Shown here piece by piece: positions 13,425 through 64,000 of a DNA stretch of 64,000 bases. Source of the stretch: Macrostomum lignano. Its lineage: Eukaryota. The stretch covers positions 310,001 to 374,000 of the forward strand of contig NIVC01000087.1 in assembly GCA_002269645.1 (NCBI GenBank), in the 5' to 3' direction. The notes below the pieces were generated by a model. That model made no database searches, was not told the origin of the DNA, and saw only the letters and a program-made list of their open reading frames with translations. The position numbers were made by a program, and so were the translations under genes. How positions within the stretch are numbered: position 1 is the first letter of the stretch; each line of letters opens with the position of its first letter.

Positions 13425-14190
13425 AATGCAGAAAACGGTAGAGAAATGCGGACAGAAGGCACAGGAGGATATCATTAAAAATTACATTTGTAAAGATTAA
13501 ATCGGCAAGCGATCCTCAAATAGTGCAGCGGGAAATGGATTTAAAAAAGGAAAGCCACCATACATTGAGAGTGCTTCCGACAGATTGAGAAACTCGAGAA
13601 ATTTGCTATTATTTACGAGTAGCATGAGTTTCCACCCCTGAGACGTAGGGTTGGGACTAGCTAAGCATAAATTTCAGCAAGCAGATGCTGTCACAGCAAC
13701 TGCCGCCAATCTGCCAGTTGAGGGATTTATTGGCATAGTTACAGGCAAAGCGCCGTAATTCTGCCGAACATTACGAGGCTAAATATCAAGAGAGCCACAC
13801 TGACAGCCGGAAGTGTTTTTCGCTTCATTCAATTCTTATCTGAAAGCCCAGTCAATATATCTATCCATCCAGTCAGTTAGCATTTGACAAGCCAGTTCAC
13901 GCGGGAGGGAGCTCTCCCATTGGCTGAGAGGCCGCCTTCCTAGACCGGCCACGATTCGTCCTTGCTGGGCCACACAGACTTCCACAGCCATAGGAAAGTT
14001 GAATAGGGCAAACAACACTCTGACACCCCGCCCCGCATAAAACTGACGGCCCTACCTCAGGCTGTCCACGCCAGCTCGTCACGCCAGCTTCTCTGTCAGC
14101 CCCGATTCGTCACCAGCTAAACAGGCCTGGCGAATAAAGGCAACAACAGGACCAGCTTGTTCGGGTCTCCGGCACTCACTCATTCATAGC

Positions 14191-14203
14191 TTTTCACTTC
14201 TAG
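14191..14203 (+). other. Splice acceptor (cis 5'UTR intron or SL trans-splice site) upstream of FZD4
   Basis: TTTTCACTTCTAG|G 25 nt before the ATG, preceded by a CACTCACTCAT branch-point-like segment. Confidence 0.55.
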
Positions 14204-14228
14204 GTCTTCCAAGAGACCCGACAGCATC

Positions 14229-23608: not shown

Positions 23609-24084
23609 GTTGGCTATTTCCACATTGTCTTATTTTGAAGATCTAAGATCATGGAGCCGAAAACTCAACTTTTCAAAGCTTACTCTCACTGCTTTCATTT
23701 TTTCCAAGAAGCGAGACAGTCACTGGCAAACAAGGGGAAAAAGCAAACAGATCCTGTGCCGAATCGTCCAGGTGTCCGGAGTGGTCCTTGTCTCGGACAA
23801 GGCAAGGCAAACTGCTCGTCCACTTTGGGATCGGATTTCATTGGCAGGCAGAATGCAGGGAGATGGAGTGCGACTTTTTCTACTACTTTTTTTTATCAGA
23901 TGCGTTGGTTCGATTCCTGTCACAGATATTTCAATCACTGTGCTCATGCAGATCGAGTTCTCAGTTTCTCTTGGTCCTCTGCATCTGCTTCTGAATTTCT
24001 ACTTCCCTCAATATTTCTGTCGCATCAGCAATGGCTCGGCATCTCAGCACTCGCTGCATCTCTCCCTTCAACCTTCTCTCCGCT

Positions 24085-24977
24085 GTCCTCCGCTCTCTTC
24101 CGCTCCCCTCCGCTCCACTCCGCTCCCCTCCGCTCCACTCCGCTCCCCTCCGCTCTCCTCCGCTCCTCTCCAGCCTCTCCGCTCCCCTCCACTCCCCTCC
24201 GCTCCTCTCCAGCCTCTCCGCTCCTCTCCAGCCTCTCCGCTCCCCTCCACTCCACTCCAGCCTCTCCGCTCCCCTCCACTCCCCTCCAGCCTCTCCGCTC
24301 CCTCCAGCCTCTTCGCTCCCCTCCAGCCTCTCCGCTCCCCTCCACTCCCCTCCAGCCTCTCCGCTCCCCTCCGCTCCCCTCCGCTCCCCTCCAGCGTCTC
24401 CGCTCCACTCCGCTCCCCTCCGCTCCCCTCCGCTCCCTCCAGCCTCTCCGCTCCCCTCCGCTCCCCTCCAGCCTCTCCGCTCCCCTCCGCTCCCCTCCGC
24501 TCCCCTCCGCTCCCCTCCAGCCTCTCCGCTCCCCTCCGCTCCTCTCCGCTCCCCTCCAGCATCTCCGCTCCCCTCCAGCATCTCCGCTCCCCTCCGCTCC
24601 CCTCCGCTCCCCTCCAGCATCTCCGCTCCCCTCCGCTCCCCTCCGCTCCCCTCCAGCCCCTCCGCTTCCCTCCAGCCTCTCCGCTTCCCTCCACTCCCCT
24701 CCAGCCTCTCCGCTCCTCTCCAGTCTATCCGCTCCCCTCCGCTCCCCTCCGCTCTCCTTCGCTCCCCTCCGCTCCCCTCTGCTCCCCTCCGCTTCCCTCC
24801 GCTCCCCTCCACTCCCCTCCGCTTCCCTCCAGCCTCTCCGCTCCCCTCCACTCCCCTCCAGCCTCTCCGCTCCCCTCCGCTCCCCTCCGCTCCCCTCCGC
24901 TCCCCTCCGCTCCCCTCCAGCCTCTCCGCTCCCCTCCGCTCCCCTCCAGCCTCTCCGCTCCCCTCCGCTCCCCTCCT
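24085..24977 (-). repeat. Inverted copy of the G-rich array, (GCTCCCCTCC)n with AGCCTCTCC variants
   Basis: Units and variants are reverse complements of 22578-23608. Confidence 0.95.
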
Positions 24978-25721
24978 GTCTCTTCTCTCCCGCATCGCAT
25001 CCATGACCCTATTAACACTATTCGCCACGGTCCTCTCTTCCATCGAGCACAAAGAGTGTTTTACCAAACTGAAACATTCAGAAAGCAGGAACAGAGACAG
25101 TCTTCCATTAGGAAAAATATTTTAATTATGAAAATTGAATTACAGGGGCAATGGATAAGCAAAACAGCCCAGCAATGGATACGTGAAAGCAATTAGAGAA
25201 AACAAACAATGAAGCAAAATGGATGGCTAAATTCTCACCTACCATTTGAAGCTCATCAAACAAGCTGGCCTCGTTAAATAACCTGCCAAACTGACTGACT
25301 GACGGGCGCCCGCATCTCAGGGCATTTTTATGTTACGAGTTAATTAAAAATTTATCGAAACAAATCAGTCTAGATTAACCATGCAGTTCGAATTTGTTAG
25401 AATGGCTTCAATGACTCACAGGGAAATGCTCAGGAGAACAACGGGTACAAAAGTGCTCTGTCTGCCTGTCTGCTCAAGAGTCAATATAGGAGGACTGTGC
25501 AAACACAAGTCAGTTAGTTGACTCGGCTATGCAAAGCCTAGCTATAGAGATTGTGAGCGAAATTGAAGCCAACTTTAATAACGATTTTCTAAGCCCAAGC
25601 CATGAAGTCCGCGCGCACTGGGTCAGTGTCAGGTCAATTCCCAATCTGTACTCTTTTATTGAGTTACCGAAGTGGAAGTTTTTTCGGTAGGCAGCTTTTG
25701 AGATGCTTTGTTCTCATTAAC

Positions 25722-42302: not shown

Positions 42303-42568
42303 CTAGGAAGCCCGCTGCTGACTGCTGCCATCGGCTCCATCGCCGGAGCTACCGCTGCCGCTGCCGCCCTCCTCCGTGCTGTCTTCATCGTCTTCTCCGT
42401 CGTTCTCTGCTTCGCCGCTGCTGTCGCCGCTGCTGCCGCTGCTACCACAGGATGCGTCGCGGGGGTTGATTTGGGCCCGACGCTCAACAACTACGAAGTC
42501 GCTCGGCGGCGGAGTCTGACTGCCGCTGATGTCGGAGCCGTCGGGCGCAGTCAGAGAGCTGGACAGGT
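42303..42568 (-). CDS. RhoGEF terminal coding exon (acidic S/G/D/E-rich)
   Basis: GCGCAG|AC acceptor, in frame to TAG at 42305-42303; ATTAAA about 30 nt downstream (42268-42273) is a possible polyA signal. Confidence 0.75.
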
Positions 42569-44985
42569 CTGCGCAATGTTTTGAACAGATGACAGGCGGT
42601 TCGGGAGTGTAAAATCAGAAGCAATTTGACCCCACCTGGTATGCCCAGTGTGAATGTCCTGGAATCTTTGGTTTGGGGAGGTCAACTGACCCCTCATTGA
42701 ATCTCTTGTGGTTGGGGGAGGTCAACTGACACCTCATGGAATCTGTTGTGGTTGGGGGGAGGTGAGCCGACCTCTCAAGGAGTATGTGATTGAGGGGGGG
42801 TCAGCAGGTCGTTCCTGGAATCTGTAGATAGGGGGGGTCAATTGACCCTTCATGGAATCTTTTGTGGTTCGGGGGAGGTCAACTGACACCTGATTAAATC
42901 TGTTGTGGTTGGGGAAGGTCAACTGACACCTCATGGAATCTGTTGTGGTTGGGGGGAGGTGAGCCGACCTCTCAAGGAGTATGTGATTGAGGGGGGGTCA
43001 GCAGGTCGTTCCTGGAATCTGTAGATAGGGGGGGTCAATTGACTCTTCATGGAATCTTTTGTGGTTCGGGGGAGGTCAACTGACACCTGATTAAATCTGT
43101 TGTGGTTGGGGAAGGTCAACTGACACCTCATGGAATCTGCTGTGGTTGGGGGGAGGTGAGCCGACCTCTCAAGGAGTATGTGATTGAGGGGGGGGTCAGC
43201 AGGTCGTTCCTGGAATCTGTAGATAGGGGGGGGTCAATTGACCCTTCATGGAATCTTTTGTGGTTCGGGGGAGGTCAACTGACACCTGATTAAATCTGTT
43301 GTGGTTGGGGAAGGTCAACTGACACCTCATGGAATCTGCTGTGGTTATGGGGAGGTCAACTGACCCCTTATGGAATTCGTGGTTGGAGGTCAATTCACCC
43401 CTCTGTAATTCTTAAAATTAGCAAGTAGAGTTCATCTGTGACAATTTATTGGATTAGAAATGCAAACCAATCGATATTTTGCAAAGCACATTGCGTATTT
43501 AGACTTAAACGGATAAATTTGGATTTGTTATAATATAATACAATAAGCTTTTGCTTAAAAGTAAAAAACAGTACAGAAAATAATAAATAATAAATAGGAG
43601 TTAATAACCCCAACACTTGTAGTGCAAAAAGTTAATCTGCTTATTATTTTCGCTTATTGATTATAGAAGATGCTCAATATGCATCCATATCTCATCAATA
43701 TAGTAGTGTTACCAAAAATATGTTAAATTATATTATTAACGAGTTGCAACCGGCTCGGCAACAGTATAGCAAACCGAATTAAAACAGACAAATAACATTT
43801 TACTGAGCCAAAGCCCAACAGATACTGTATCGGCGTACTTGACAATCGAAATCCAAAGACGACAGCTGAAAATTATTCGTCATGTTTAAAGTCTTTTGAA
43901 GTATTGATAAAACCCGAACCCAAGTATGACCCAAGTATGACAAGTATTTCTGACTGGTCATTCTGACTGGTCATTCTGACTGGTCAATCTGACTGGTCAT
44001 TCTGACTGGCCATTCTGACTGGCCATTCTGACTGGTCATTCTGACTGGCCATTCTGACTGGCCATTCTGACTGGTCATTCTGACTGGCCATTCTGACTGG
44101 CCATTCTGACTGGTCATTCTGACTGGTCATTCTGACTGGTCATTCTGACTGGCCATTCTGACTGGTCATTCTGACTGGTCAATCTGACTGGTCATTCTGA
44201 CTGGCCATTCTGACTGGTCATTCTGACTGGCCATTCTGACTGGTCATTCTGACTGGTCAATCTGACTGGTCATTCTGACTGGCCATTCTGACTGGTCATT
44301 CTGACTGGCCATTCTGACTGGTCATTCATTCGGTCATTCATTCGGTCATTCTGACTGGTCATTCATTCGGTCATTCTGACTGGTCATTCTTTTAGTCATT
44401 CTGACTGGTCATTCATTCGGTCATTCTGACTGGTCATTCTTTTAGTCATTCTGATTGGCCATACATTCGTTCATTCTGACCGGTCACTCATTCAGTCATT
44501 TGACTGGTCCTTATTTCGGCCATACTCACCATTATTATCATCGGGAGACGCATCCCCCCTGTTGGCATTGCCGCCGCTGCTGCTGCTGTTAAAGCGGCTG
44601 TCTTTTGCTGAATTGACCGCCTGCAGTGCCCGCTTGAGGGTGGCCACGTCGGCGGACACTTCATCGCCAGCGACCGGCGTTGGCGGCGGCAGGTCCGCTG
44701 AATAATAGCTGCCGGCTGCGGCTGCCCAGGTGGACGGTTCCTGCATTGAAATTGGTAAAATTTATTCGTTTGTCCGGGTAAACAGCGCCAGCAACTATGA
44801 ACTGATTTGCGGAGCAAAATGCTTTGTCAGCTAGTTAGCCAGAGTAGATATACGAGCATTAGGTTTAAGTCTGTGTATTTGTCTCTGTTTGTCTTTCTGC
44901 CTGTCTGCCTGTTTGTCTGTTTGTCTGTCTATCTATCTGTGTGTGTGTGTGTGTGTGTGTGTGTCTGTCTGTGTGTCTGTCTGTG

Positions 44986-47429: not shown

Positions 47430-49410
47430 GCCTGCCTGTCTGTCTGTCTGCCTGTCTGTCTGTCTGTGTAAGTGTAGTGGCTGCATTAGTGTCTTTCTGA
47501 GTCTGTGTCTGTGTCTGTCTGTCTGTCTTACTGTGTGTAGTGTCGGTTTTAGTGTCTTTCTGAGTCTGCGCCTGTCTGTCTGTCTCTGTGTGTCTGTCAT
47601 AGTGTTTGCCTGGCTGTTTGGCTTCAATCGCTCAGAAGACCCCAGTGCAGGTCAAGCATCCGGACTCTGCCAGTTCAGCCACAGCAGGCGGCTCACCTCG
47701 ATGCACTGGGCGGCAGCCCTAGCCGCGGCGGCCACGCCAGCCAGCAAAGAGTCCGCCATCACCAGCCTACTGCTATCGGCATTGCAATCATAATTCTCAG
47801 CATCAGCTGCGGCAGCCGCATCGCTGCAGGAGCTGACAGCCATCAGGCGGCTGACAATTTCCCCAACAGCCGAGTGGGCCTGCTCAACTAGGCGCCAGGC
47901 GGCTAGGATTTTAACCGACTGGTTGCTAGGCAACAGGCGTTGCTGCGAGCGCGGAAAAATGAATTTGGGGGAAAATTGTACATGTAAATAATTGATGCAA
48001 ATAAACGCCTGGGCGATTTTTATAAGGGAATATGATATATACGGAGACTCGAGCTCAGGACCTTTACATTGGCACGATTAGTATAGTCGTTGAAAACTAA
48101 CAAAATTCTATATATTAAACGGTGACTGAGAGCGTAAGCAAATTTAATACAATTATAGAATGTCTATTCACTAGCTTTGTCAAATTAATAATTAATATCG
48201 ACTCAATGCAAAGCGTGACGTGATGAGTAGCTTTATAGTAAAAAAATGCAAAACAAATATAAGCTTATTTATTATTATGATATGCAAAACCATGCGCAAC
48301 ACATCCTACTAGCACTAATATAATAGTATAAGTAAGCGGTTATAACTTATACTGGCTAAATAGATTGCATTATTAGATCAGACACTAGAATAACTAAATG
48401 GGCCACTCAGCACATTTGCGTGTAAGCTACTTTCAGTTCAGTAGCAAGTTAAACCGAAGCATTTTAATGTATTTTTAAAGCCAAGGCTCATTTATTGGCT
48501 CTTACCACCTCCCCCCAGCCTAAACTCTCCAACCGCGCCTTTCCACACTACCCCCCCACCCCGCCCCATTTTTTATTGCCATTCTCGGAATTCCAGCCTA
48601 AAGCTGCCATGTACATTTCAGTGGACTGGCTAATGTACATTATCGCTGAACCAATTAGCAAGTTGTTTGAGACTGCAAGCTTGGGCTTCTAAACTTATCA
48701 AAGTCATTTCAGCTGCCTTTTTATAAAATAGCTTACGTATTCTTCTTTGCTACTGAACTGAAAGTAGAAAGCTGTTTCACTAAGTATATGACTATATGTG
48801 CCTGAGTGGGCCATCTAGTTATTTTAGAATCCGGGCATTAGATTCAATATTCGTTATTAACATGTACGAGCACACAACCCTTGTTGATGCATGCACTGCA
48901 CAGCACAGCAGTACCATTTCATGCCATATTCAACTAGCTTTGCATATTTATCAACTAAAAACTATAATACATCTGTCCCCTACTACTTGTAGTAGCTTAC
49001 TAACTGTAGGAGATCAACCTCTCGGGCACAAACGGCCTCATAAGTGTAGAACATTGTTGGACACTGTAAGATTCGTTTCAGATTAAACTGCTTTCAATTT
49101 GTTAGTAAAAGAATGAGTGATCATCGAAATGAAATATTGAGAAATTATTAAAGTTATTGTGGGAGCCTAATATGAAAATCAGCCCGCTGGTCTCACCTCG
49201 GCCACAATCTGCGTCAGGCAGGCCCGCTGCTCACGCATCAGCTCAGATTGGCGCTGGAAATTCTCCACTGACTGCTGGACTCCAGACACTGGAGATACCG
49301 CTGATGCCGCTGCGGGCTCGTCTGACTCTGGGGCCGCCTCTGCGAGTGGAAGTTGATCGTAGGTAGATAAATAGATGGATAGATAGACAGATAGATAGAT
49401 AGATAAATAG

Positions 49411-49935: not shown

Positions 49936-52900
49936 AACAAACAGACACATAGACAGCAGACAGACAGACAGACAAACAGACAGACACAAAGGCAGGCAGA
50001 CAGACGTTCGCACAGAAGACTGCACCTGTGTCAGCTATTCTTGATGAAGAGTCCGAGCTCTCCTCCACCTCCGGTCTGGCGGCAGGCTGTTGCTGCTCAT
50101 CCAGCTCCTGCTCCTGCTGCTGCTGCTCGGGCAGAGGCGGCTCGGCAGCCACAGCGGCGGCAGCAATGGCCATTCCGGCGTGACTGTTCGCCCGACGATG
50201 CCGCTCGGTAGCCTCGGTGGATGCCGCAGGCGTGGCAGCCGAAGTTGCGGCAGGGGCGGAGGCGACAGCCGAGACAGCAGAAACAGCTGGGCCCCTTGAT
50301 AAAAATGAGAAGAACACAATTAGCCTACTATTAGCCTACTGATTGACCCACCTATTAGCCTACTAATTGACCCACCAATTAGCCTACTAATTGACCCACC
50401 AATTAGTCTACTGATTGACGTAAAATTAGCCTACTAATTGGCCCAACAATCAGCCTACTAATTGACCCAACAAATAGCCTATAATTGACGCACCAATTAG
50501 CCTACTACTTGACGCACCAATTAGCCTACTAATTGATTCACCTATTAGGCTACTAATTGACCCACCAATTAGCCTACTAATTGACCCACCAATTAGTCTA
50601 CTGATTGACACAACAATTAGTCGACTGATTGACGTAAAAATTAGCCTACTAATTGACACAAAAATTAGCCTACTAATTGGCCCAACAATTAGCCTGCTAA
50701 TTGACCCAACAAATAGCCTATAATTGACGCACCAATTAGCCTACTAATAACTAATATACTAGGCTAGGCTAGCTTCAAGCTTTGACCCCAAAAGTGCTAA
50801 GCCAATATAGCTGAGCCACAAATCGAGACTAAATGAGAAATACAAAGAGAACTTACCTGGTTAGGTCAGTGCTGGACCCGGCCATGCTGGAGTGGCGATC
50901 CAGCCGGCTAGACAGCCGCGGCGCCAGCTTGCGAATGCACTCGGCAAACTCGCTAGCCGGACTGCTGGCCTCGTTGGCCAAAAACGGCATCCTGGGCCGG
51001 TCTTGGCTGACCCGAAATTCCAGCATTAGGGGCTTGACGCGGCCGCTGTTGTCAAGAGTCTGTTCGATTATGATGCGAAATTCGGCGCACCTGGCTCGCG
51101 ACGACGAGCCGCCGCCAATTTGGTCCAGTTTACGTCGATTCTCGGTGTCCGTGTCGAATATGTGGACGACGCTTTCCATGGGTATGATTGGCGGGCAGCT
51201 AACTGCGATCAGGCTGGCGTGGCCTGGCGCCGGCTGCTCGCTCGGCGCCGGAGTCTGGGGAAGCGGCAACGACTGCGGCTGTTGTTGCTGCAACTGCTGC
51301 TGCTGCTGCTGATGCTGTTGCTGGGAGGCCAGCGACATACTGGGGCCTGGAATTGTGGGATAATAAATCGTGCATAGGGTTATGACTATGGTCATGTATC
51401 GGGTTTGTGACTATGGTCATGTATCGGGTTATGACTATGGTCATGTATCGGGTTATGACTATGGTCATGTATCGGGTTATGACTATAGTCATGTATCGGG
51501 TTATGACTATGGTCATGTATCGGGTTATGACTGGTCATGTATCGGGTTATAACTATGGTCATGTATCGGGTTATGACTATGGTCATGTATCGGGTTATGA
51601 CTATGGTCATGTATCGGGCTATGACTATGGTCATGTATCGGGTTTGTGACTATGGTCATGTATCGGGTTATGACTATGGTCATGTATCGGGTTATGACTA
51701 GGGGTATGGTCATATATTGATCTATTTAAGTCGATAGAAACACATATGGTCACTAACCAGTTTATGACAGAGGTCATAGAATTGATCATGACTATGATTA
51801 CAGATTAATATACTCACCAAGATGTTTAAGCAGCTGATATTTAGTAGTTCGATTCTCGTCAGACTCGGAGATGACCAATAGGAACTCGGTGAACACGAAC
51901 AGTCGCAGCCGGTAGTTGTCCAAGCCGGGCATGTGCACCTCCCTAGTTAGGTAGAGCCGGCACGTGTGCAAGTGGGAGATCTGGTTTCTGAACCGGTGTA
52001 CCTGGCTCTCGTCCATCATTGATTTTTCCCAGAAATTGGAAAACGATTTACTCAGCACCAGCTGGCGACTGAGCTCTTTCAGCTTGACTCCGATGTTGTT
52101 GCTGTAGTCGCTGATGTCCTTGGCTATGCTTAGGCATGCTTCCAGATTCTCGGCGTCCTTGGCTGCAAAATTGAATTATGGCGTTGTGAAGGAAACCGTT
52201 TTATACTGCTGATCGATGGACTAGACAGCCTGAAAAGCTAGGAGGCTGGCTGCCCAGTCTGAGGATCTGGGAGGCTGGCTGCTCAGCCTGAGGATCTGGG
52301 AGGCTGGCTGCTCAGTCTGAGGATATGGGAGGCTGGCTGCTCAGCCTGAGGATCTGGGAGGCTGGCTGCTCAGCCTGAGGATCTGGGAGGCTGCCTGCTC
52401 AGTCTGAGGATATGGGAGGCTGGCTGCTCAGCCTGAGGATCTGGGAGGCTGGCTGCTCAGCCTGAGGATCTGGGAGGCTGGCTGCTTAGCCTGAGGATCT
52501 ATTGCCTCCCCCATAAATGCTGCATTCCATAACGCAAGCAAACCAGAAGCTCACCAGCAAAACTACAAGCGGACTTGGCCTTCTTAGCCTTCTTAACCGC
52601 GGCATCGAGCAGGGTGACCATTCGCATAGTCTGCTGCATGTTGACGCTGTACAGATCAACAAATCGCCGCTTATTCATAACCGGATGCGCCTCGGCCCGG
52701 CTGAAGAAGCCGTTAAAGTCCTGATTGTCGCGGCGCAGGCTGATCAGCTTCAGTATAATATCGTCCTCATTAATATTAGATGTCTTACGTTTCGTGGCGG
52801 TTTTAGCAAACCCGAAGCTCAGACTAAGCCGTTTAAATTCGAACACGTGATCGTCCGCGGTGTACCAGGCTAACAGGCGCTCGCCGAACTGTTCCAGCAA

Positions 52901-55900
52901 GCAGGCGCTAATGCGGAATTCTTCAAGGCTCGGGCCTCGCAAACTTGCTAGCAGGCTTTTGTACAGGGCGATGCAATCGGGCACGAAGTGCAGCCCCAGC
53001 TGGTTGAGCGTCTCTTTGTAGGCGGCCGGCCAGTGCTGCACAAACAGCTGCTGCAGAATGGTCAGAGCGCGCAGGTGGCTCATGGAGCTGAACACCATCT
53101 CGTGCAGAGCTAGCTGGTATTCTTTCAGTCTGTCAAAGTCTTTGTCGTAGGTTTTTCTTAATTCCGCTAATCGGCCGTTCAGATCCATGTCCATTATGTA
53201 GGCGTGAAAGTCCACCTGTACGGACCGGATGTCCGGGTGCCCGCTCACGTGGTCGCTTGGCGCTAGCGGCTGCGGCGGCTGCGTACGGGCCTGCTGAGAA
53301 CTCTCATCCTTAGCTTGGTCCTGCATTGGAGAGGATTAAATAAGGCATTGGGAGCAATAGGCTGGGATATTTGGTGCAGGAATGGGATCACACAGACTCA
53401 TGAGTTTCGCAGCTGGGATAATGGGGTCATCATAGCTGGGATAATAGGGTCATCATAGCTGGAATAATAGGGTCATCTGGGATAAGCTGGGTCATCAGGG
53501 GGTCATCAAGCAGGGGTCAGGATCATCAGGTGGTCAGGGGGTCATCATAGGGTCATCATTGCTGGGATAATGGGGTCACCACAGCTGGGATAATAGGGAT
53601 CATCATAGCTGGGATAATAGGATCATCATAGCTGGGATAATGGGGTCATCATAGCTAAGATAATGGGGTCATTATAGCTAAGATAATGGGGTCATCATAG
53701 CTAAGATAATGGGATCATCATAGCTGGCATAATGGGGTCATCATAGCTGGGATAATAAGGTCATCATAGCTGGGATAATGGGATCATCATAGCTGGCATA
53801 ATGGGGTCATTATAGCTGGGATAATAGGGTCATCATAGTTAAGATAATGGGGTCATCATAGCTAAGATAATGGGATCATCATAGCTGGCATAATGGGGTC
53901 ATCATAGCTGGGATAATAGGGTCATCATAGCTGGGATAATGGGATCATCATAGCTGGCATAATGGGGTCATTATAGCTGGGATAATAGGGTCATCATAGC
54001 TAAGATAATGGGGTCATCATAGCTAAGATAATGGGATCATCATAGCTGGCATAATGGGGTCATCATAGCTGGGATAATAGGGTCATCATAGCTGGGATAA
54101 TGGGATCATCATAGCTGGCATAATGGGGTCATTATAGCTGGGATAATAGGGTAATCATAGCTGGGATAATAGGGTAATCATAGCTAAGATAATGGGATCA
54201 TCATAGCTAATATAATGGGATCATCATAGCTGGCATAATGGGGTAATCATAGCTGGGATAATGGGATCATCATAGCTGGCATAATGGGGTCATCATAGCT
54301 GGGATAATAGGGTCATCATAGCTGGGATAATAGGGTTATCATAGCTGGGATAATAGGGTCATCATAGCTGGGATAATGGGGTCATCATAGCTGGGATAAT
54401 GGGGTCATCATAGCTGGGATAATAGGGTCATCATAGCTGGGATAATAGGGTCATCATAGCTGGAATAATAGGGTCATCTGGGATAAGCTGGGTCATCAAG
54501 CAGGGGTCAGGATCATCAGGTGGTCAGGGGGTCATCATAGGGTCATCATTGCTGGGATAATGGGGTCACCACAGCTGGGATAATAGGGATCATCATAGCT
54601 GGGATAATAGGATCATCATAGCTGGGATAATAGGGATCATCATAGCTGGGATAATAGGATCATCATAGCTGGGATAATAGGATCATCATAGCTGGGATAA
54701 TAGGATCATCATAGCTGGGATAATGGGATCGTGAGCAAGAAACAAAAAGCTCCCATTAGGCTCACAGATTCAGAATCTGCAGCAGCAGCAGACGGAGTGG
54801 CTGACAGTTCGCCGTTGGCAGGCGACAGCGGCTGCAGGCTGGGCGAGCGGGACTGGCGGCCGAGGGCGGCGGCCGTGGCGATAGAATCGGCCTCGGGCAG
54901 GTCGACGACTTCTGAGGATTAGCAGTTATTGAGAATACACTTAGTACACTATTTCCAACAACGTACACGCTCACCTAGACTTTCTCATCGTCGGGTACGT
55001 AGACTCCCCGATGAAAACATATTTATAACAAGTCTATTTAGACTACTTGAGTTAGTAGAAAGTTAGGACTCTTAGTAGGCGACGAGTTCGCGACTCTTTT
55101 TTACGATTCTGCAACACACGTGATGCGCTCGTGACTCAACAGTCGCCTCTCTGTTGCACTGCAGTTACTCGTATTTAGCGAATATTGTCATGGTAACGTT
55201 TTCAACAGGCTAGCAAAATTCTTGATTTATTGCAACTGTGCTCAACAGGAATCCCGCCTGTAAACTAACGGAGCAAGCTTTACAAGTTTAAATCGTGATT
55301 GAGACTGAAGCAAACAAAAAACACAACATATATCTTACGAATAGCCGAAGCTGGGTCAGACGACTGTTGGCTTTGTCGGCGCAAATTCTGCTGCTGCTGC
55401 TGCCGCAAGAGTCCATCGCTATCAAGACTTGAAGACATGGCCTGAGACGAAGCCGGATGCTGAGACGGATGTTGCGCATGCGGCGGCGGCTGCGGCGGCT
55501 TCTGACTGCCTGGTGGCACTGGAATTGACAGCCAGTTGATTTTTTGTTAATAAATCAATTAAAAGTAGATAATACATATAGAATTTCACTAAACGCGCCG
55601 CTTGTAGGGGGGGGGGGAACAGCGAGTTTGCTTAATCAAATTAGATTATTAGCAGGAAAGAAAACCAACAAAAGCAAAACGGTTTGAAAATCAATTTTTT
55701 CAAGTGCAAAGGAGTACGTAGGCTGAGTAAACAGGCAAGATAGGATAAATCATGGGATATTTACGCAGTTGTGAGACAGAAAAAACTATATATTCAATCA
55801 AAGAACTGTTAGTATTATCTGAATTCATTAACCCTGACTTTGCATTGCAACAGATGGGGCTATCAGCAGTTTCTCTATAATTATTAACACCATCTAATAA

Positions 55901-58303
55901 AGCTTAAATTTGGATTATTATCGCACTGTAGGATAGCGTTAAAGCATTTTTTCAAAATACCAAGTCTAAATCGTTTTTAATACCGACAAAACACCTCGAG
56001 GTAAGAGTGCTAGTTAAGGGTTGGGGGTAGCGGGCGGTCAGCTGAGAGACAGGGGGATGGGGGTAGCGGGCGGTCAGCTGAGAGACAGGGGGATGGGGGT
56101 AGCGGGCGGTCAGCTGAGAGACAGGGGGATGGGTGTAGCGGGCGGTCAGCTGAGAGACAGGGGGATGGGGGTAGCGGGCGGTCAGCTGAGAGACAGGGGG
56201 TTGGTGGTAGTGGTCGGTCAGCTGAGAAAACAGGGGGTTGGGGGTAGCGGGCGGTCAGCTGAGAGACAGGGGGATGGGGGTAGCGGGCGGTCAGCTGAGA
56301 GACAGGGGGTTGGTGGTAGTGGTCGGTCAGCTGAGAAAACAGGGGGTTGGGGGCAGCGGGCGGTCAGCTGAGAGACAGGGGGTTGAGGTCTTAGCTAAAG
56401 ATGGACACACGTGACGCTCTCAGTTGTAAATAAACGATAGCAGCGAATCAACATGTTACGATAGGCATCCCGTAGTCTAAAAAAGGCACTAAACAAATGA
56501 GCCGAGAAGTACCGTCATCTTCTTGCTGTTCATTGGTTGAGTCCGGCTCCAAGTCAAAAAAGGTCGACTTGCCAGACTTCCGACGCGTTGTGTCAGCCAA
56601 CCAGGAGCGTCCTATGTATACGTACGTATTACAGTTAGCGAATTGCGCTACTTAAAGTAGAAATAAAAGATTTTTTGCAGCCAAAATAAATGCAAGCTAA
56701 TAAAAACACAAAGCGTTTTCGCTATCAAGAATACAGGTAAAATGATAACATTGTGTGGAGACAAACACTGGATAGTGAAAAGTGCAAATGACAGATAGGC
56801 GCTGGAAAATTGAATAATTGCAAGCTGAGTAAGATTTAGCAAGCTGAGCAAGGCGGAGAACACGTGCATACTAACTAGCACATCAATACCTAAACTTCTT
56901 GTACCTTTAAATGAGCCGCTTGACTTGTGTCCGTGATCTTCTTTATAGTAGAAGAAAGTTTAGAAAAAATATTAATAAATTATATGCAATTATGCCGCTA
57001 GTAAATAAAAGTACAATAAAATACGAGTATATAGACAATAAGCGCAACTTACTACTTTCCCGCGAGCTGCTCAGACTGCGAGCCAGTATGCTTAGCTTAG
57101 AGGTTGTGCAGCTAATTGGCTTGACCTTGTCCATGCAGGACTTGTGCGCCGCCACTTCGCAGTCGCCAACTGTTTAAAGGATAATGAGGCCCGGGGTTGG
57201 GAAATTTACTATTATATTGAGTACTTGACCTTCAGTTCTTTACTAAATCAGAAATCAATACCTATAGCGGGTCACAAATGCTACTCAGCGGGTCATAAAT
57301 GCTACTCAGTGAGTCACCGATGATTACTCAGCGGGTCACAAATGCTACTCAGTGGGTCACAAATGCTACTCAGCGGGTCACAAATACTACTCAGCGGGTC
57401 ACAAATGCTACTCAGTGGGTCACCGATGATTACTCAGTGGGTCACAAATGCTACTCAGTGGGTCACCGATGATTACTCAGTGGGTCACAAATGCTACTCA
57501 GCGGGTCACAAATGCTACTCAGTGGGTCACCGATGATTACTCAGTGGGTCACAGATGCTACTCAATGGGTCACAAATGCTACTCAGTGGGTCACAAATGC
57601 TACTCAGTGGGTCACCGATGATTACTCAGTGGGTCACAAATGCTACTCAATGGGTCACAAATGCTACTCAGTAGGTCACAAATGCTACTCAGTGGGTCAC
57701 AAATGCTACTCAGTGGGTCACCGATGATTACTCAGTGGGTCACAAATGCTACTCAATGGGTCACAAATGCTACTCAGTGGGTCACTGATGATTACTCAGT
57801 GGGTCACAAATGCTACTCAGCGGGTCACAAATGCTACTCAGTGGGTCACCCGAGAACGCAAACGCCAGCCAACCTGTGCAAACGTATCCCTGCGGCCCGG
57901 GCCCGGCCAGCAGGCGGCCACAAGCGGAGCAGGGATGCAGCCGGTCCAGCTCAACCAATCTGAGCAGATGCGGGCCACGCTTCTCAAACGTCGCCGAAGA
58001 CCGCCGCCCGGCGCCGCCGCGGCTCTGTCGCGGACAATTCAACACCGCAGCTGGCCAAAAATCGTTGGCAGCCGTATCGCCCGGTCGCAAATGAAACACG
58101 TGCTCGAGCACGGTTGCTAAGCAACCGGCCTCTAGATCGCCTCCGAACGAAGCGCTAGCTAGGAATTGCAGATGAGCCTGCATGATTGGCCTAGACTTGT
58201 TTAGAAACAGTTGCTGCTTTTCCTCGGACAGGTCCTCGCGCAGGCTGTCTATGGCCGGGAGAATGTCCGACACGAAGCCGTCCCGGCGTTTGGCGAGAAC
58301 CTC
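42303..58303 (-). CDS. RH-RhoGEF-like gene (RhoGEF2/ARHGEF1/11/12 family), 13 exons, 1235 aa in window, 5' end not found in the window
   Basis: Exons 58303-57874, 57169-57053, 56611-56513, 55518-55339, 54911-54766, 53320-52555, 52162-51818, 51346-50857, 50294-50026, 49339-49197, 47942-47697, 44740-44530, 42568-42303 all have AG/GT boundaries and matching phases, totalling 3708 nt and ending in TAG. Contains a complete C1 zinc finger across a splice junction, a DH domain aligning to LARG ([10 protein letters not shown] vs IGEDLLTWFS; FFSRAEAHP vs FVQDAESNP) and a PH-like domain. Confidence 0.85.
42640..43405. repeat. 197-bp tandem repeat (about 3 copies) built from diverged ~38-bp subunits, in the last RhoGEF intron
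   Basis: Identical blocks 197 bp apart; subunit GAATCTGTTGTGGTTGGGGGAGGTCAACTGACACCTCATG. Confidence 0.9.
43948..44497. repeat. 13-bp (CTGACTGGTCATT)n grading into the 25-bp unit CTGACTGGTCATTCATTCGGTCATT
   Basis: The 25-mer is the reverse complement of the 32795-34702 monomer. Confidence 0.93.
44530..44740 (-). CDS. RhoGEF exon L
   Basis: ATGCAG|GAA acceptor, G|GTGAGT donor; [22 protein letters not shown]... Confidence 0.78.
44868..45545. repeat. (TGTC)n/(TATC)n compound microsatellite
   Basis: Direct inspection. Confidence 0.95.
46545..47590. repeat. (TGTC)n/(TGCC)n compound microsatellite
   Basis: Direct inspection. Confidence 0.95.
47697..47942 (-). CDS. RhoGEF exon K (helical tail segment)
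   Basis: CTCGCAG|CAA acceptor, GAG|GTGAGC donor, 246 nt, phase 0/0. Confidence 0.75.
48385..48827. mobile_element. Non-autonomous TIR element (MITE), about 440 bp, intronic
   Basis: TIRs CTAGAATAACTAAATGGGCCACTCAG / CTGAGTGGGCCATCTAGTTATTTTAG; subterminal inverted pair CTACTTTCAGTTCAGTAGCAA / TTGCTACTGAACTGAAAGTAG; highly similar copy at 41172-41597. Confidence 0.85.
49197..49339 (-). CDS. RhoGEF exon J (possible coiled coil)
   Basis: CTCGCAG|AG acceptor, GAG|GTGAGA donor; [27 protein letters not shown]. Confidence 0.75.
49363..50005. repeat. (GATA)n followed by (GACA)n compound microsatellite
   Basis: Direct inspection. Confidence 0.95.
50026..50294 (-). CDS. RhoGEF exon I (A/E/Q-rich tail)
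   Basis: TTTTTATCAAG|G acceptor, G|GTGCAG donor, phase 2/1. Confidence 0.72.
50318..50748. repeat. Diverged 24-bp minisatellite AATTAGCCTACTAATTGACCCACC
   Basis: Direct inspection. Confidence 0.88.
50857..51346 (-). CDS. RhoGEF exon H: polyQ insert and PH C-terminal half
   Basis: TTCCAG|GC acceptor, AG|GTAAGT donor; [10 protein letters not shown]...LMLEFRV...EFAECIRKL. Confidence 0.85.
51376..51700. repeat. 24-bp minisatellite GACTATGGTCATGTATCGGGTTAT
   Basis: Direct inspection. Confidence 0.95.
51818..52162 (-). CDS. RhoGEF exon G: DH C-terminal helix and PH N-terminus
   Basis: TTTTGCAG|CC acceptor, G|GTGAGT donor; [20 protein letters not shown]...[15 protein letters not shown]. Confidence 0.88.
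52238..52500. repeat. 29-bp minisatellite GGAGGCTGGCTGCTCAGCCTGAGGATCTG
   Basis: Direct inspection. Confidence 0.95.
52555..53320 (-). CDS. RhoGEF exon F: most of the DH domain
   Basis: ATGCAG|GAC acceptor, G|GTGAGC donor; [22 protein letters not shown] (CR1) ... [12 protein letters not shown] (CR3). Confidence 0.9.
53410..54730. repeat. 23-bp minisatellite ATAGCTGGGATAATGGGGTCATC
   Basis: Direct inspection; irregular junction block duplicated about 1 kb apart. Confidence 0.95.
54766..54911 (-). CDS. RhoGEF exon E (linker)
   Basis: CCTCAG|AA acceptor, TCT|GTGAGC donor, phase 1/0; [27 protein letters not shown]. Confidence 0.75.
55339..55518 (-). CDS. RhoGEF exon D (P/Q/S-rich linker)
   Basis: TTCCAG|TG acceptor, C|GTAAGA donor, 180 nt, phase 1/1. 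Confidence 0.75.
56018..56385. repeat. 33-bp G-rich minisatellite GGGGTAGCGGGCGGTCAGCTGAGAGACAGGGGG
   Basis: Direct inspection. Confidence 0.93.
56513..56611 (-). CDS. RhoGEF exon C (99 nt)
   Basis: CATAG|GA acceptor, weaker G|GTACTT donor, phase 1/1; [33 protein letters not shown]. Confidence 0.65.
57053..57169 (-). CDS. RhoGEF exon B: second half of C1 domain
   Basis: AAACAG|TT acceptor and A|GTAAGT donor. The join gives [23 protein letters not shown], completing H-x12-C-x2-C-x13-C-x4-C-x4-H-x2-C-x8-C. Confidence 0.88.
57268..57850. repeat. 21/22-bp minisatellite GGGTCACAAATGCTACTCAGT / GGGTCACCGATGATTACTCAGT
   Basis: Direct inspection. Confidence 0.95.
57874..58303 (-). CDS. RhoGEF exon A: putative RH-domain C-terminus and first half of C1 domain
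   Basis: CCTCAG|GAG acceptor, ACAG|GTTGGC donor; [10 protein letters not shown]...[10 protein letters not shown]...[32 protein letters not shown]. Confidence 0.8.
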
Positions 58304-58334
58304 CTGAGGTGGATCGAAAAGATAATATATAACC

Positions 58335-61300
58335 ACTGTGTGACCTAAGAGGCGACGTCTTATAAAGTGGTTCACAATGGTAGGTCGCTACTGTGTGACC
58401 TGAGAAGTGTGTGGTCTCATAACGTGGGTCACAATGGTAGGTCACCACTGTGTGACCTGAGAAGTGTGTGGTCTCATAAAGTGGGTCACAATGGTAGGTC
58501 ACCACTGTGTGACCTGAGAAGTGTGTGGTCTCATAACGTGGGTCACAATGGTAGGTCGCTACTGTGTGACCTGAGAAGTGTGTGGTCTCATAAAGTGGGT
58601 CACAATGGTAGGTCACCACTGTGATCTGAGAGGTGACGTCTCATAAAGTGGGTCACAATGGTAGGTCGTCACTGTGTGACCTGAGAAGTGTGTGGTCTTA
58701 TAAAGTGGGTCACAATGGTAGGTCACCACTGTGATCTGAGAGGTGACGACTCATAAAGTGGGTCACAATGGTAAGTCACCACTGTGTGACCTGAGAAGTG
58801 TGTGGTCTCATAAAGTGGTTCACAATGGTAAGTCACCACTGTGTGACCTGAGAAGTGTGTGGTCTGATAAAGTGGTTCACAATGGTAAGTCACCACTGTG
58901 TGACCTGAGAAGTGTGTGGTCTCATAAAGTGGTTAACAATGGTAGGTCACCACTGTGACCTGAGAAGTGTGTGGTCTCATAAAGTGGTTCACAATGGTAA
59001 GTCACCACTGTGTGACCAGAGAAGTGTGTGGTCTCATAAAGTGGTTCACAATGGTAGGTCGCTACTGTGTGACCAGAGAAGTGTGTGGTCTCATAACGTG
59101 GTTCACAATGGTAGGTCGCTACTGTGTGACCTGAGAAGTGTGTGGTCTCATAACGTGGTTCACAATGGTAGGTCGCTACTGTGTGACCTGAGAAGTGTGT
59201 GGTCTCATAAAGTGGTTCACAATGGTAGGTCGCTACTGTGTGACCTGAGAAGTGTGTGGTCTCATAACGTGGGTCACAATGGTAGGTCGCTACTGTGTGA
59301 CCTGAGAAGTGTGTGGTCTCATAAAGTGGTTCACAATGGTAGGTCGCTACTGTGTAACCTGAGAAGTGTGTGGTCTCATAAAGTGGGTCACAATGGTAAG
59401 TCGTCACTGTGTGACCTGAGAAGTGTGTGGTCTCATAACGTGGGTCACAATGGTAGGTCGCTACTGTGTGACCTGAGAAGTGTGTGGTCTCATAAAGTGG
59501 GTCACAATGGTAGGTCATCACTGTGATCTGAGAGGTGACGTCTTATAAAGTGGGTCACAATGGTAGGTCGCTACTGTGATCTGAGAGGTGACGTCTCATA
59601 AAGTGGGTCACAATGGTAAGTCGTCACTGTGTGACCTGAGAAGTGTGTGGTCTCATAAAGTGGTTCACAATGGTAAGTCGTCACTGTGTGACCTGAGAAG
59701 TGTGTGGTCTCATAAAGTGGTTCACAATGGTAAGTCGTCACTGTGTGACGTGAGAAGTGTGTGGTCTCATAAAGTGGTTCACAATGGTAAGTCACCACTG
59801 TGTGACCTGAGAAGTGTGTGGTCTCATAAAGTGGTTCACAATGGTAAGTCGTCACTGTGTGACCTGAGAAGTGTGTGGTCTCATAAAGTGGTTCACAATG
59901 GTAAGTCGTCACTGTGTGACCTGAGAAGTGTGTGGTCTCATAAAGTGGTTCACAATGGTAAGTCGTCACTGTGTGACCTGAGAAGTGTGTGGTCTCATAA
60001 AGTGGTTCACAATGGTAAGTCGTCACTGTGTGACCTGAGAAGTGTGTGGTCTCATAAAGTGGTTCACAATGGTAAGTCGTCACTGTGTGACCTGAGAAGT
60101 GTGTGGTCTGATAAAGTGGTTCACAATGGTAAGTCACCACTGTGTGACCTGAGAAGTGTGTGGTCTCATAAAGTGGTTAACAATGGTAGGTCACCACTGT
60201 GACCTGAGAAGTGTGTGGTCTCATAAAGTGGTTCACAATGGTAAGTCACCACTGTGTGACCAGAGAAGTGTGTGGTCTCATAAAGTGGTTCACAATGGTA
60301 GGTCGCTACTGTGTGACCAGAGAAGTGTGTGGTCTCATAACGTGGTTCACAATGGTAGGTCGCTACTGTGTGACCTGAGAAGTGTGTGGTCTCATAACGT
60401 GGTTCACAATGGTAGGTCGCTACTGTGTGACCTGAGAAGTGTGTGGTCTCATAAAGTGGTTCACAATGGTAGGTCGCTACTGTGTGACCTGAGAAGTGTG
60501 TGGTCTCATAACGTGGGTCACAATGGTAGGTCGCTACTGTGTGACCTGAGAAGTGTGTGGTCTCATAAAGTGGTTCACAATGGTAGGTCGCTACTGTGTA
60601 ACCTGAGAAGTGTGTGGTCTCATAAAGTGGGTCACAATGGTAAGTCGTCACTGTGTGACCTGAGAAGTGTGTGGTCTCATAACGTGGGTCACAATGGTAG
60701 GTCGCTACTGTGTGACCTGAGAAGTGTGTGGTCTCATAAAGTGGGTCACAATGGTAGGTCATCACTGTGATCTGAGAGGTGACGTCTTATAAAGTGGGTC
60801 ACAATGGTAGGTCGCTACTGTGATCTGAGAGGTGACGTCTCATAAAGTGGGTCACAATGGTAAGTCGTCACTGTGTGACCTGAGAAGTGTGTGGTCTCAT
60901 AAAGTGGTTCACAATGGTAAGTCGTCACTGTGTGACCTGAGAAGTGTGTGGTCTCATAAAGTGGTTCACAATGGTAAGTCGTCACTGTGTGACGTGAGAA
61001 GTGTGTGGTCTCATAAAGTGGTTCACAATGGTAAGTCACCACTGTGTGACCTGAGAAGTGTGTGGTCTCATAAAGTGGTTCACAATGGTAAGTCGTCACT
61101 GTGTGACCTGAGAAGTGTGTGGTCTCATAAAGTGGTTCACAATGGTAAGTCGTCACTGTGTGACCTGAGAAGTGTGTGGTCTCATAAAGTGGTTCACAAT
61201 GGTAAGTCGTCACTGTGTGACCTGAGAAGTGTGTGGTCTCATAAAGTGGTTCACAATGGTAAGTCGTCACTGTGTGACCTGAGAAGTGTGTGGTCTCATA

Positions 61301-64000
61301 AAGTGGTTCACAATGGTAAGTCGTCACTGTGTGACGTGAGAAGTGTGTGGTCTCATAAAGTGGTTCACAATGGTAAGTCGTCACTGTGTGACCTGAGAAG
61401 TGTGTGGTCTCATAAAGTGGTTCACAATGGTAAGTCGTCACTGTGTGACCTGAGAAGTGTGTGGTCTCATAAAGTGGTTCACAATGGTAAGTCGTCACTG
61501 TGTGACCTGAGAAGTGTGTGGTCTCATAAAGTGGTTCACAATGGTAAGTCGTCACTGTGTGACCTGAGAAGTGTGTGGTCTCATAAAGTGGTTCACAATG
61601 GTAAGTCGTCACTGTGTGACCTGAGAAGTGTGTGGTCTCATAAAGTGGTTCACAATGGTAAGTCGTCACTGTGTGACCTGAGAAGTGTGTGGTCTCATAA
61701 AGTGGTTCACAATGGTAAGTCGTCACTGTGTGACCTGAGAAGTGTGTGGTCTCATAAAGTGGTTCACAATGGTAAGTCGTCACTGTGTGACCTGAGAAGT
61801 GTGTGGTCTCATAAAGTGGTTAACAATGGTAGGTCGTCACTGTGTGACCTGAGAAGTGTGTGGTCTCATAAAGTGGTTCACAATGGTAAGTCGTCACTGT
61901 GTGACCTGAGAAGTGTGTGGTCTCATAAAGTGGTTCACAATGGTAGGTCGTCACTGTGTGACCTGAGAAGTGTGTGGTCTCATAAAGTGGTTCACAATGG
62001 TAAGTCGTCACTGTGTGACCTGAGAAGTGTGTGGTCTCATAAAGTGGTTCACAATGGTAAGTCGTCACTGTGTGACCTGAGAAGTGTGTGGTCTCATAAA
62101 GTGGTTCACAATGGTAAGTCGTCACTGTGTGACCTGAGAAGTGTGTGGTCTCATAAAGTGGTTCACAATGGTAAGTCGTCACTGTGTGACCTGAGAAGTG
62201 TGTGGTCTCATAAAGTGGTTCACAATGGTAAGTCGTCACTGTGTGACCTGAAAAGTGTGTGGTCTCATAAAGTGGTTTACAATGGTAAGTCGTCACTGTG
62301 TGACCTGAGAAGTGTGTGGTCTCATAAAGTGGTTCACAATGGTAAGTCGTCACTGTGTGACCTGAGAAGTGTGTGGTCTCATAAAGTGGGTCACAATGGT
62401 AGGTCACCACTGTGATCTGAGAGGTGACGTCTCATGAAGTGGGTCACAATGGTAGGTCGCTACTGTGTGACCTGAGAAGTGTGTGGTCTCATAAAGTGGG
62501 TCACAATGGTAGGTCACCACTGTGATCTGAGAGGTGACGTCTCATAAAGTGGGTCACAATGGTAAGTCACCACTGTGTGACCTGAGAAGTGTGTGGTCTC
62601 ATAAAGTGGTTCACAATGGTAAGTCACCACTCTGTGACCTGAGAAGTGTGTGGTCTCATAAAGTGGTTCACAATGGTAAGTCACCACTGTGTGACCTGAG
62701 AAGTGTGTGGTCTCATAAAGTGGTTAACAATGGTAGGTCACCACTGTGACCTGAGAAGTGTGTGGTCTCATAAAGTGGTTCACAATGGTAAGTCACCACT
62801 GTGTGACCAGAGAAGTGTGTGGTCTCATAAAGTGGTTCACAATGGTAGGTCGCTACTGTGTGACCTGAGAAGTGTGTGGTCTCATAACGTGGTTCACAAT
62901 GGTAGGTCGCTACTGTGTGACCTGAGAAGTGTGTGGTCTCATAACGTGGTTCACAATGGTAGGTCGCTACTGTGTGACCTGAGAAGTGTGTGGTCTCATA
63001 AAGTGGTTCACAATGGTAGGTCGCTACTGTGTGACCTGAGAAGTGTGTGGTCTCATAAAGTGGTTCACAATGGTAGGTCGCTACTGTGTGACCTGAGAAG
63101 TGTGTGGTCTCATAAAGTGGTTCACAATGGTAGGTCGCTACTGTGTGACCTGAGAAGTGTGTGGTCTCATAACGTGGTTCACAATGGTAGGTCGCTACTG
63201 TGTGACCTGAGAAGTGTGTGGTCTCATAACGTGGTTCACAATGGTAGGTCGCTACTGTGTGACCTGAGAAGTGTGTGGTCTCATAAAGTGGTTCACAATG
63301 GTAAGTCGTCACTGTGTGACCTGAGAAGTGTGTGGTCTCATAAAGTGGTTCACAATGGTAAGTCGTCACTGTGTGACCTGAGAAGTGTGTGGTCTCATAA
63401 AGTGGTTCACAATGGTAGGTCGCTACTGTGTGACCTGAGAAGTGTGTGGTCTCATAAAGTGGGTCACAATGGTAAGTCGTCACTGTGTGACCTGAGAAGT
63501 GTGTGGTCTCATAACGTGGGTCACAATGGTAGGTCGCTACTGTGTGACCTGAGAAGTGTGTGGTCTCATAAAGTGGGTCACAATGGTAGGTCATCACTGT
63601 GATCTGAGAGGTGACGTCTCATGAAGTGGGTCACAATGGTAGGTCGCTACTGTGTGACCTGAGAAGTGTGTGGTCTCATAAAGTGGGTCACAATGGTAGG
63701 TCACCACTGTGATCTGAGAGGTGACGTCTCATAAAGTGGGTCACAATGGTAAGTCACCACTGTGTGACCTGAGAAGTGTGTGGTCTCATAAAGTGGTTCA
63801 CAATGGTAAGTCACCACTCTGTGACCTGAGAAGTGTGTGGTCTCATAAAGTGGTTCACAATGGTAAGTCACCACTGTGTGACCTGAGAAGTGTGTGGTCT
63901 CATAAAGTGGTTAACAATGGTAGGTCACCACTGTGACCTGAGAAGTGTGTGGTCTCATAAAGTGGTTCACAATGGTAAGTCACCACTGTGTGACCAGAGA
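58335..64000. repeat. Intronic 57-bp satellite (over 5.6 kb, runs off the window) with 53-bp variants and ~1.2-kb higher-order blocks
   Basis: Unit CTGTGTGACCTGAGAAGTGTGTGGTCTCATAAAGTGGTTCACAATGGTAAGTCGTCA; marker GGTTAACAATGGTAGGTCACCAC at 58931, 60175, 62722, 63909. Confidence 0.97.

Follow-up and report, generated by a model that had tools for sequence, protein, structure and literature searches.

We analysed 64,000 nucleotides of the Macrostomum lignano genome (contig NIVC01000087.1, positions 310,001 to 374,000 of the forward strand; hereafter the window) and identified on the minus strand a gene, BOX15_Mlig000325g5, whose product (PAA91426.1, P0013 below, 1687 amino acids) is annotated solely as 'hypothetical protein'. 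This protein is the flatworm counterpart of LARG and PDZ-RhoGEF, two Rho guanine nucleotide exchange factors (GEFs). Several near-invariant residues of its Dbl homology (DH) domain are replaced, and an earlier note on this stretch, made from the letters alone, read it as a candidate pseudo-GEF. We favour another account, to which we give about an even chance: PAA91426.1 would be a strongly diverged Rho GEF that still binds its GTPase and is probably active, perhaps weaker or retuned, with a remodelled alpha1/alpha5 helix packing. GenBank already lists the gene model, which is uncharacterised, and the motif changes are new as far as we found.

The gene is real, intact and spliced, and is not a pseudogene. 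Over the 16.4 kb compared, the locus DNA of PAA91426.1 matches the window at every position (100% identity; assembly Mlig_3_7). The GenBank annotation of M. lignano rests on RNA-seq, by way of a genome-guided transcriptome assembly (PMC5730564). Because the PAA91426.1 annotation is RNA-seq-derived, the exon that encodes the DH domain is part of a transcript model, so that a lack of transcripts, named in the earlier note as a refutation, does not apply. This exon (52555–53320, minus strand, as are all exons and coding features of the gene described below) encodes helices alpha1 to alpha5, from conserved region 1 (CR1) to CR3, preceded by a low-complexity linker. It is a single exon of 766 nucleotides with an AG acceptor, a GTGAGC donor and no internal stop, and was assigned from splice sites, frame, Pfam and alignment to LARG and PDZ-RhoGEF.

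Nine successive exons, running from 58303 to 50026, splice through GT-AG sites into a continuous frame of 947 amino acids (the nine junctions checked are all of this type). The window contains amino acids 559–1687 of the protein (1129 amino acids, 12 annotated exons), together with two extra in-frame candidate cassette exons. Exons for the PDZ domain and for the greater part of the RGS homology (RH) region lie beyond position 64000, outside the window and on the far side of a minisatellite-filled intron. The 13-exon intact frame of 1235 amino acids described previously is thus continuous and GT-AG spliced as claimed, but the gene extends past the window and has 12 annotated exons inside it; the two candidate cassette exons probably explain the earlier count.

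Profile searches and the predicted fold firmly place the DH-PH (pleckstrin homology) module with the RH-containing Rho GEFs (RH-RhoGEFs), to which homology is weak by sequence. Identity of the DH-PH to LARG and PDZ-RhoGEF is 21–23%. The Pfam RhoGEF model (PF00621) scores 22–22.6 bits on the window protein, below the gathering cut-off of 27.6, and phmmer against PDB returns LARG at E=9e-4 and PDZ-RhoGEF at E=6e-3. A profile of the Macrostomum family searched against the whole of PDB matches solely ARHGEF11, ARHGEF12 and ARHGEF1 (PDZ-RhoGEF, LARG and p115-RhoGEF; E=4e-7 to 1e-3). Against an alignment of LARG, PDZ-RhoGEF and a frog ARHGEF11-like protein, hhalign gives 97.3% probability (E=2.2e-11).

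In an AlphaFold model of the DH-PH, a helical bundle (all-helical over model residues 26–285) leads into a beta-sandwich, with a helix at the end. The mean predicted local distance difference test score (pLDDT) is 62, with the DH helices mostly at 70–89 and the PH part at 40–80. When this model was searched with Foldseek, the best 13 matches were DH-PH structures of p115, PDZ-RhoGEF and LARG, and 46 DH-PH structures were matched at E≤1e-3 (best E=1.5e-9), with alignments that span the DH-PH. The earlier description of a DH scaffold that aligns well therefore holds for profiles and predicted fold but overstates the similarity of the sequences themselves.

PAA91426.1 consists of a PDZ domain, a putative, diverged RGS-like region, a putative C1 finger, a DH domain and a predicted PH domain. 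(PDZ)/RGS/C1/DH/PH is the inferred ancestral layout of the RH-RhoGEF subfamily (Fort & Blangy 2017, PMC5499878). The architecture of PAA91426.1 is probably this ancestral one, and together with the PDB profile matches it bears out the membership proposed in the earlier note. The N-terminal PDZ domain (PF00595, 44.2 bits) is shared with LARG and PDZ-RhoGEF. The putative C1 finger between RH and DH has no counterpart in the mammalian RH-RhoGEFs. The same domain order, with C1 in this position, is presumably found in the invertebrate RH-RhoGEFs Drosophila RhoGEF2 and C. elegans RHGF-1, whose layout we take to be PDZ-RGS-C1-DH-PH and of which we assume PAA91426.1 to be the counterpart as well.

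PDZ is the domain of PAA91426.1 that Pfam recognizes. The C1 finger has the pattern H-x12-C-x2-C-x13-C-x4-C-x4-H-x2-C-x8-C, with eight of eight zinc ligands; it had been called perfect, but its C-x4-C and C-x8-C spacing is atypical and the C1_1 model scores 24.7 bits against a cut-off of 26.5. The Pfam RGS-like model does not match P0013 at E≤0.1 and gives sub-threshold scores of 24.7 and 14.8 bits in paralogues (cut-off 27). A family profile of the RH region has one match in PDB, a weak one to the rgRGS chain 3cx6_B (E=0.078), and the likeness to mammalian RH-RhoGEFs is correspondingly weak in this part. Solely the C-terminal tail of the RGS-like region falls inside the window. The Pfam PH model has no match on PAA91426.1, where a low-complexity insert of 50 residues splits the predicted PH domain.

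A conserved acidic stretch with a Phe after it lies just before the RGS-like region, outside the window (DDDEEEPDIDISSFMS, DDEEDPDISIGQFVS and EEEEDPDIGVESFVS among P0013, P0008, P0012 and P0010; locus L002). It recalls the EDEDF-type acidic element that rgRGS domains use on G-alpha13.

Database matches place the gene in a Macrostomum-specific, fast-evolved paralogue family. Searched exhaustively with phmmer, 1.84 billion cluster representatives yielded nine proteins at E≤0.001, eight from M. lignano and one from a frog. The frog protein (P0011, Pelobates cultripes CAH2281834.1) is ARHGEF11-like and contains three near-identical tandem DH copies, which boost its score. As this is the only match outside Macrostomum, the Macrostomum DH-PH has diverged much further than orthologues ordinarily do. 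When the DH-PH and the family profile were used in word-index protein searches, M. lignano entries alone came back, and no orthologues from other flatworms. The triple DH of the frog protein may itself reflect an assembly or annotation duplication.

We identified at least three older paralogue groups beyond the window gene: P0008, P0009/P0012 (PAA74481.1, locus L001) and the fragment P0010. DH-PH identity to the window gene is 65% for P0008 and about 50% for P0009/P0012, and the linkers are unalignable. P0008 just exceeds the Pfam RhoGEF cut-off (28.2 bits). Our literature search found no description of this RhoGEF family or of its motif changes; the only paper it returned on M. lignano and a RhoGEF concerns Vav. 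In UniProt, A0A1I8H608, A0A1I8IEY3, A0A1I8H3Y0, A0A1I8FML1, A0A1I8FQQ9 and A0A1I8F5R6 (P0002–P0007) are fragmentary or frameshifted models from the older ML2 assembly. Their automatic names ('E3 ubiquitin-protein ligase HECW2', 'XRCC1_N domain', 'Ras-GEF domain', 'F-box domain' and 'Diacylglycerol kinase') look like mis-annotations.

The unusual CR1 (53063–53104) and CR3 (52604–52639) strings reported in the earlier note are present in the window exactly as quoted and align to LARG NELFYTERAHVRTL and MQRLTKYPLLLD as stated. Related strings recur in the paralogues. CR1 reads HEVIFSSKSHLRSL (HEVIFSSKSH) in P0008, HEILFACMSHVRAL (HEILFACMSH) in P0012 and HELVFACASHLRAL (HELVFACASH) in P0010; CR3 reads MQFTMRMFLLLQ in P0012 and is not covered by the P0010 fragment. 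This recurrence means that the odd motifs are not chance or sequencing error. The 3' boundary of the DH exon falls at the same codon and phase in the paralogue locus L001, so that the intron position is conserved.

Between the window gene and L001, the DH core has a proportion of nonsynonymous differences (pN) of 0.31 (divergence, dN, 0.41), whereas the linker in the same exon has a dN of 0.92. The corresponding synonymous proportion (pS) of 0.80 is saturated, so the dN/dS comparison called for earlier separates core from linker but yields no quantifiable ratio. The shared motifs, the conserved boundary and a dN well below the saturated synonymous divergence (dS) indicate that the odd motifs are old, inherited and maintained, and do not reflect decay.

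These observations bear directly on whether the gene could be a pseudogene in decay or a product of faulty assembly or annotation. In favour of that idea one could cite the sub-threshold Pfam scores and the frameshifted, unrelatedly named ML2 fragments in UniProt. The open frame is intact over at least 12 exons with GT-AG sites, a transcript-derived model exists, and the same motifs stand in paralogues at other loci; four UniProt entries (P0001 and P0004–P0006) match the window gene at 100%. Given these points and the low dN, we reject this explanation as highly improbable, in agreement with the earlier note.

The effect of the motif changes depends on which residues touch the GTPase. We set LARG numbering from the 1TXD sequence, taking its single N-terminal Trp as Trp769 (PMC4232260), and E790, E794, N975, E982, N983 and R986 all land on the right letters. 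Residues were mapped in the hhalign register, which also defines CR1, and contact lists and residue roles were taken from the structure paper on RhoA and AKAP-Lbc (PMC4232260). The CR3 assignment comes from phmmer and hhalign alignments.

In AKAP-Lbc, Glu2005 (LARG Glu794) binds RhoA at the backbone nitrogen of Val38 and at the Thr37 and Tyr34 side chains, and Glu2001 (LARG E790) packs on Tyr34 (PMC4232260). In the LARG sequence, the Glu in 'I-N-E-L' is E794 and the one in 'R-Q-E' is E790. The Glu of the CR1 'TE' pair is E799, five residues downstream of E794, and is not among the RhoA contacts named (PMC4232260). The earlier note had taken this TE Glu for the catalytic switch contact; the contact residue is E794, which is retained in the window gene as the Glu of LHEM (53099–53101), in a column that is invariant in the family and in canonical GEFs.

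We presume that the exchange-dead sites Tiam1 E1047, P-Rex1 E56, ECT2 E428 and ITSN1 E1244, each seven residues past the annotated DH start, correspond to this upstream Glu. Our literature search found no usable data for E639A, E1047A or E1244A, and a search on catalytically inactive DH domains likewise yielded nothing of use.

CR3 was misread in a similar way. The RhoA contacts given for this region are Q, T, K and two hydrophobic residues (PMC4232260), and neither the R of 'QR' nor the Y of 'KY', both previously listed as contacts, is among them. In the window gene the Gln is kept (Q935), the Lys is conservatively replaced by Arg (K939) and L943 is retained. Y940 and P941 are lost, to Met and Val (Phe at the latter position in paralogues). 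As the TE Glu, the QR Arg and the KY Tyr are not listed GTPase contacts, the case for an exchange-dead domain is much weaker than had been stated.

Helix alpha6 retains two further contacts. It is encoded with the first PH strands by a separate exon (51818–52162), assigned from hhalign, the helix and hairpin lengths of the model, and paralogues. LARG N975 maps to the Asn of DYSNN (52098–52100), aligned by hhalign to NFVNQ, and R986 to an Arg (52065–52067) within an 11-residue stretch that is invariant in three paralogues. Both match within one ungapped alpha6 register; this requires an alpha5–alpha6 hairpin seven residues longer than in LARG, which the helix lengths of the model fit (about 3.5 extra residues per arm). 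The HMMER alignment of alpha6 is offset by about one helical turn from that of hhalign, which makes the register somewhat uncertain. LARG E982 and N983 are replaced by Lys and Glu.

We take P-Rex1 E56 and N238 to occupy the alpha1 Glu and alpha6 Asn positions that are kept in PAA91426.1. The double substitution P-Rex1 E56A/N238A has been used as a GEF-dead mutant (PMC4601503).

The predicted PH domain retains a contact of its own. Its C-terminal helix (50925–50960) starts with A-S-E/D in the Macrostomum family, compared with T-x-S-(D/E) in LARG, p115 and PDZ-RhoGEF, and the S-E of the window gene corresponds to the RhoA-contact motif S1118-E1119 of LARG. The TxS(D/E) motif contacts RhoA Glu97, and LARG S1118D abolishes the contribution of the PH domain to exchange (PMC4232260). 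For the 'GEF switch' residue LARG W769, our mapping gave no confident equivalent; VDFHAYI is possible, but its spacing is off by 11 residues.

Like LARG, PAA91426.1 thus has a Glu at 794, a Gln at 935, a basic residue at 939, Asn at 975, Arg at 986 and S-(D/E) at the PH helix, and these residues may preserve the grip on the GTPase. The joint replacement of 'TE' in CR1 and 'QR..KYP' in CR3 would then represent a remodelling of alpha1/alpha5 packing and not the loss of a catalytic site, and we infer a pairing of the TE Glu with the QR Arg in the domain core. On the same mapping we infer GTPase binding and exchange activity, most likely by the standard mechanism: the DH-PH would engage both switch regions (I and II) of a Rho-family GTPase and promote GDP release under the control of the N-terminal PDZ, RH and C1 modules, possibly with weaker or retuned kinetics or partner preference.

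A number of findings weigh against this reading. Compared with LARG, E790 is replaced by Leu (two codons upstream of the CR1 His), T798 by Ser (53087–53089; Ala in paralogues) and the TE Glu E799 by Ser (53084–53086; Cys in paralogues), so that TE becomes SS or AC. In CR3, R936 is replaced by Gln (Phe in paralogues), T938 by Met and L942 by Thr (Leu in P0012), turning QR into QQ or QF and KYP into RMV or RMF. The alpha6 hydrophobics L971, V974 and V978 are turned polar (S, S/C and G/S, respectively); their AKAP-Lbc equivalents pack RhoA Leu69 and Tyr66 (PMC4232260). The PH Trp is missing: it had been read as Phe, but the Phe sits four residues upstream and the Trp position aligns with Cys (50937–50939; Ser in P0012). 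The Pfam RhoGEF, C1_1, RGS-like and PH models are all below cut-off on PAA91426.1, and the residue mapping is based on sequence and profile alignment, with a structural model of moderate confidence.

These losses are also what would be expected of a pseudo-GEF that keeps the DH-PH fold and has lost useful exchange, serving as a scaffold, a decoy, or a GTPase-activating protein or sink for G-alpha12/13; RhoA or G-alpha12/13 would perhaps still be bound through other modules. At E790, the E790G mutant of LARG keeps only 15–20% activity (PMC4232260). The existence of several paralogues means that at least one could be freed from catalysis. A precedent is the DH-PH of obscurin, which has been put forward as perhaps the first 'pseudo-GEF' (PMC10118190). 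PAA91426.1 nevertheless keeps both positions at which the classic exchange-dead mutations were made (with the P-Rex1 residues placed as above), namely the Glu of alpha1 and the Asn of alpha6. It also keeps the Gln and the basic residue of CR3, as well as R986 and the S-(D/E) contact of the PH helix.

The paralogues point the same way. Conservation between them extends beyond the fold, with the GTPase-facing blocks among the most conserved segments. All paralogues seen have the changes in common, and none among them is an obviously catalytic sister copy against which a decoy could act. Retention of the principal Glu and Asn therefore disfavours filing the protein as a pseudo-GEF on its sequence alone, and exchange-dead function, as the earlier note proposed it, is in our estimate possible but doubtful. 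A more specific version appears unlikely to us: that the new packing (SS/AC...QQ/QF...RM[VF]) and the polar switch-II groove of a private Macrostomum PDZ-RH-C1-DH-PH clade represent a selected, exchange-impaired pseudo-GEF that still docks RhoA and/or G-alpha12/13.

The same substitutions could instead reflect an active GEF with an altered substrate, such as a divergent flatworm Rho paralogue or Rac/Cdc42-like GTPases, by virtue of a rewritten switch-II groove and a partly rewritten switch-I surface. An alpha6 groove of S/S/G in place of L/V/V is consistent with this, as are T938 to Met and L942 to Thr. The conservation of these changes within the family suggests a defined partner, and many RhoA-interface residues are unconserved among RhoGEFs (PMC4232260). 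However, the PH-helix contact to RhoA Glu97, which is specific to RH-RhoGEFs, is kept and points to a RhoA-like partner. We consider a switch of substrate rather unlikely, and prefer a diverged, probably active Rho GEF with remodelled packing.

Obscurin offers a further comparison. Its DH-PH likewise departs from its subfamily at conserved GTPase-interaction positions, was inactive in vitro on nine GTPases, and led its authors to raise the idea of a pseudo-enzyme (PMC10118190). Obscurin belongs to another subfamily, that of Trio, and PAA91426.1 keeps the principal Glu and Asn.

If PAA91426.1 is active, the near-invariant 'TE', 'QR' and 'KYP' of Dbl domains would be dispensable when replaced together, which would help to separate catalytic from structural DH residues and to judge 'dead' GEFs by sequence. 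Should it prove inactive, the G12/13-Rho pathway would contain a rare case of a pseudo-GEF under selection; examples from the Dbl family in the literature so far are limited to the tentative case of obscurin (PMC10118190). In either case, the shorthand by which the CR1 TE glutamate is catalytic is off by five residues, and pseudo-GEF calls made from it would include false positives. A transgenesis method exists for M. lignano (PMC5730564), making it a convenient host for testing activity.

Two insertions further distinguish the Macrostomum DH-PH from LARG, in addition to the longer alpha5–alpha6 hairpin. A family-specific insertion of 28 residues in the DH domain (52745–52828), about 14 residues more than in LARG, was identified from alignments; its ends are conserved in paralogues and it has low pLDDT at model residues 138–151. 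A poly-Gln/Pro insertion (51273–51326, plus flanks) lies in the exon that also encodes the remaining PH segment, including the C-terminal helix (50857–51346; assigned from alignment and the model).

The remaining exons flank the DH-PH. Upstream, one exon (57874–58303; profile and splice evidence) carries the C-terminal portion of the RH region, and the C1 finger is split in halves between this exon and the next (57053–57169; splice and Pfam evidence). Two linker exons follow (55339–55518, rich in Pro, Gln and Ser, and 54766–54911), both assigned from splice sites and the GenBank model. Downstream of the PH domain, a low-complexity exon (50026–50294; splice sites and GenBank model) precedes C-terminal exons that are taken from the GenBank model: 49197–49340 (EAAPESDEP...QIVAE), 44531–44740 (...DDNN), a small exon near 43840–43866, and the last coding exon of the annotated gene (42306–42569).

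The two additional exons look like alternatively spliced cassette exons. One candidate (56513–56611, 99 nucleotides, in frame) is absent from PAA91426.1 and present in the UniProt entry A0A1I8FML1. The other (47697–47933, 237 nucleotides, phase 0-0, with good AG and GT sites) is absent from the GenBank model.

Minisatellites occur in almost every intron of the gene, and the G+C content of the window is about 48%. Across the introns (42669–64000), nearly each one contains its own minisatellite or microsatellite, with periods of 57, 21, 36, 23/46/161, 29, 24, 24, 4, 4, 8/12, 13 and 41/197 bp. The intron at 58333–64000 is filled by a 57-bp minisatellite of about 100 copies, which extends over more than 5.6 kb inside the window and runs off its end. 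Such repeat-rich introns fit the 15% of simple and tandem repeats reported for the M. lignano genome (PMC5730564).

Elsewhere in the window, we identified an uninterrupted open reading frame of 704 amino acids (14190–16301, plus strand) that encodes a Frizzled receptor (Pfam Frizzled, 336 bits; Fz cysteine-rich domain, 100 bits). This gene appears to be intronless, with about 26 kb between it and the 3' end of the RhoGEF gene. A second open frame on the plus strand (23328–25193, 622 amino acids) lies in a strongly skewed, G+C-rich region, begins with 'GSGGERRGAERLEG'-like tandem repeats and is probably repeat-derived and not coding.

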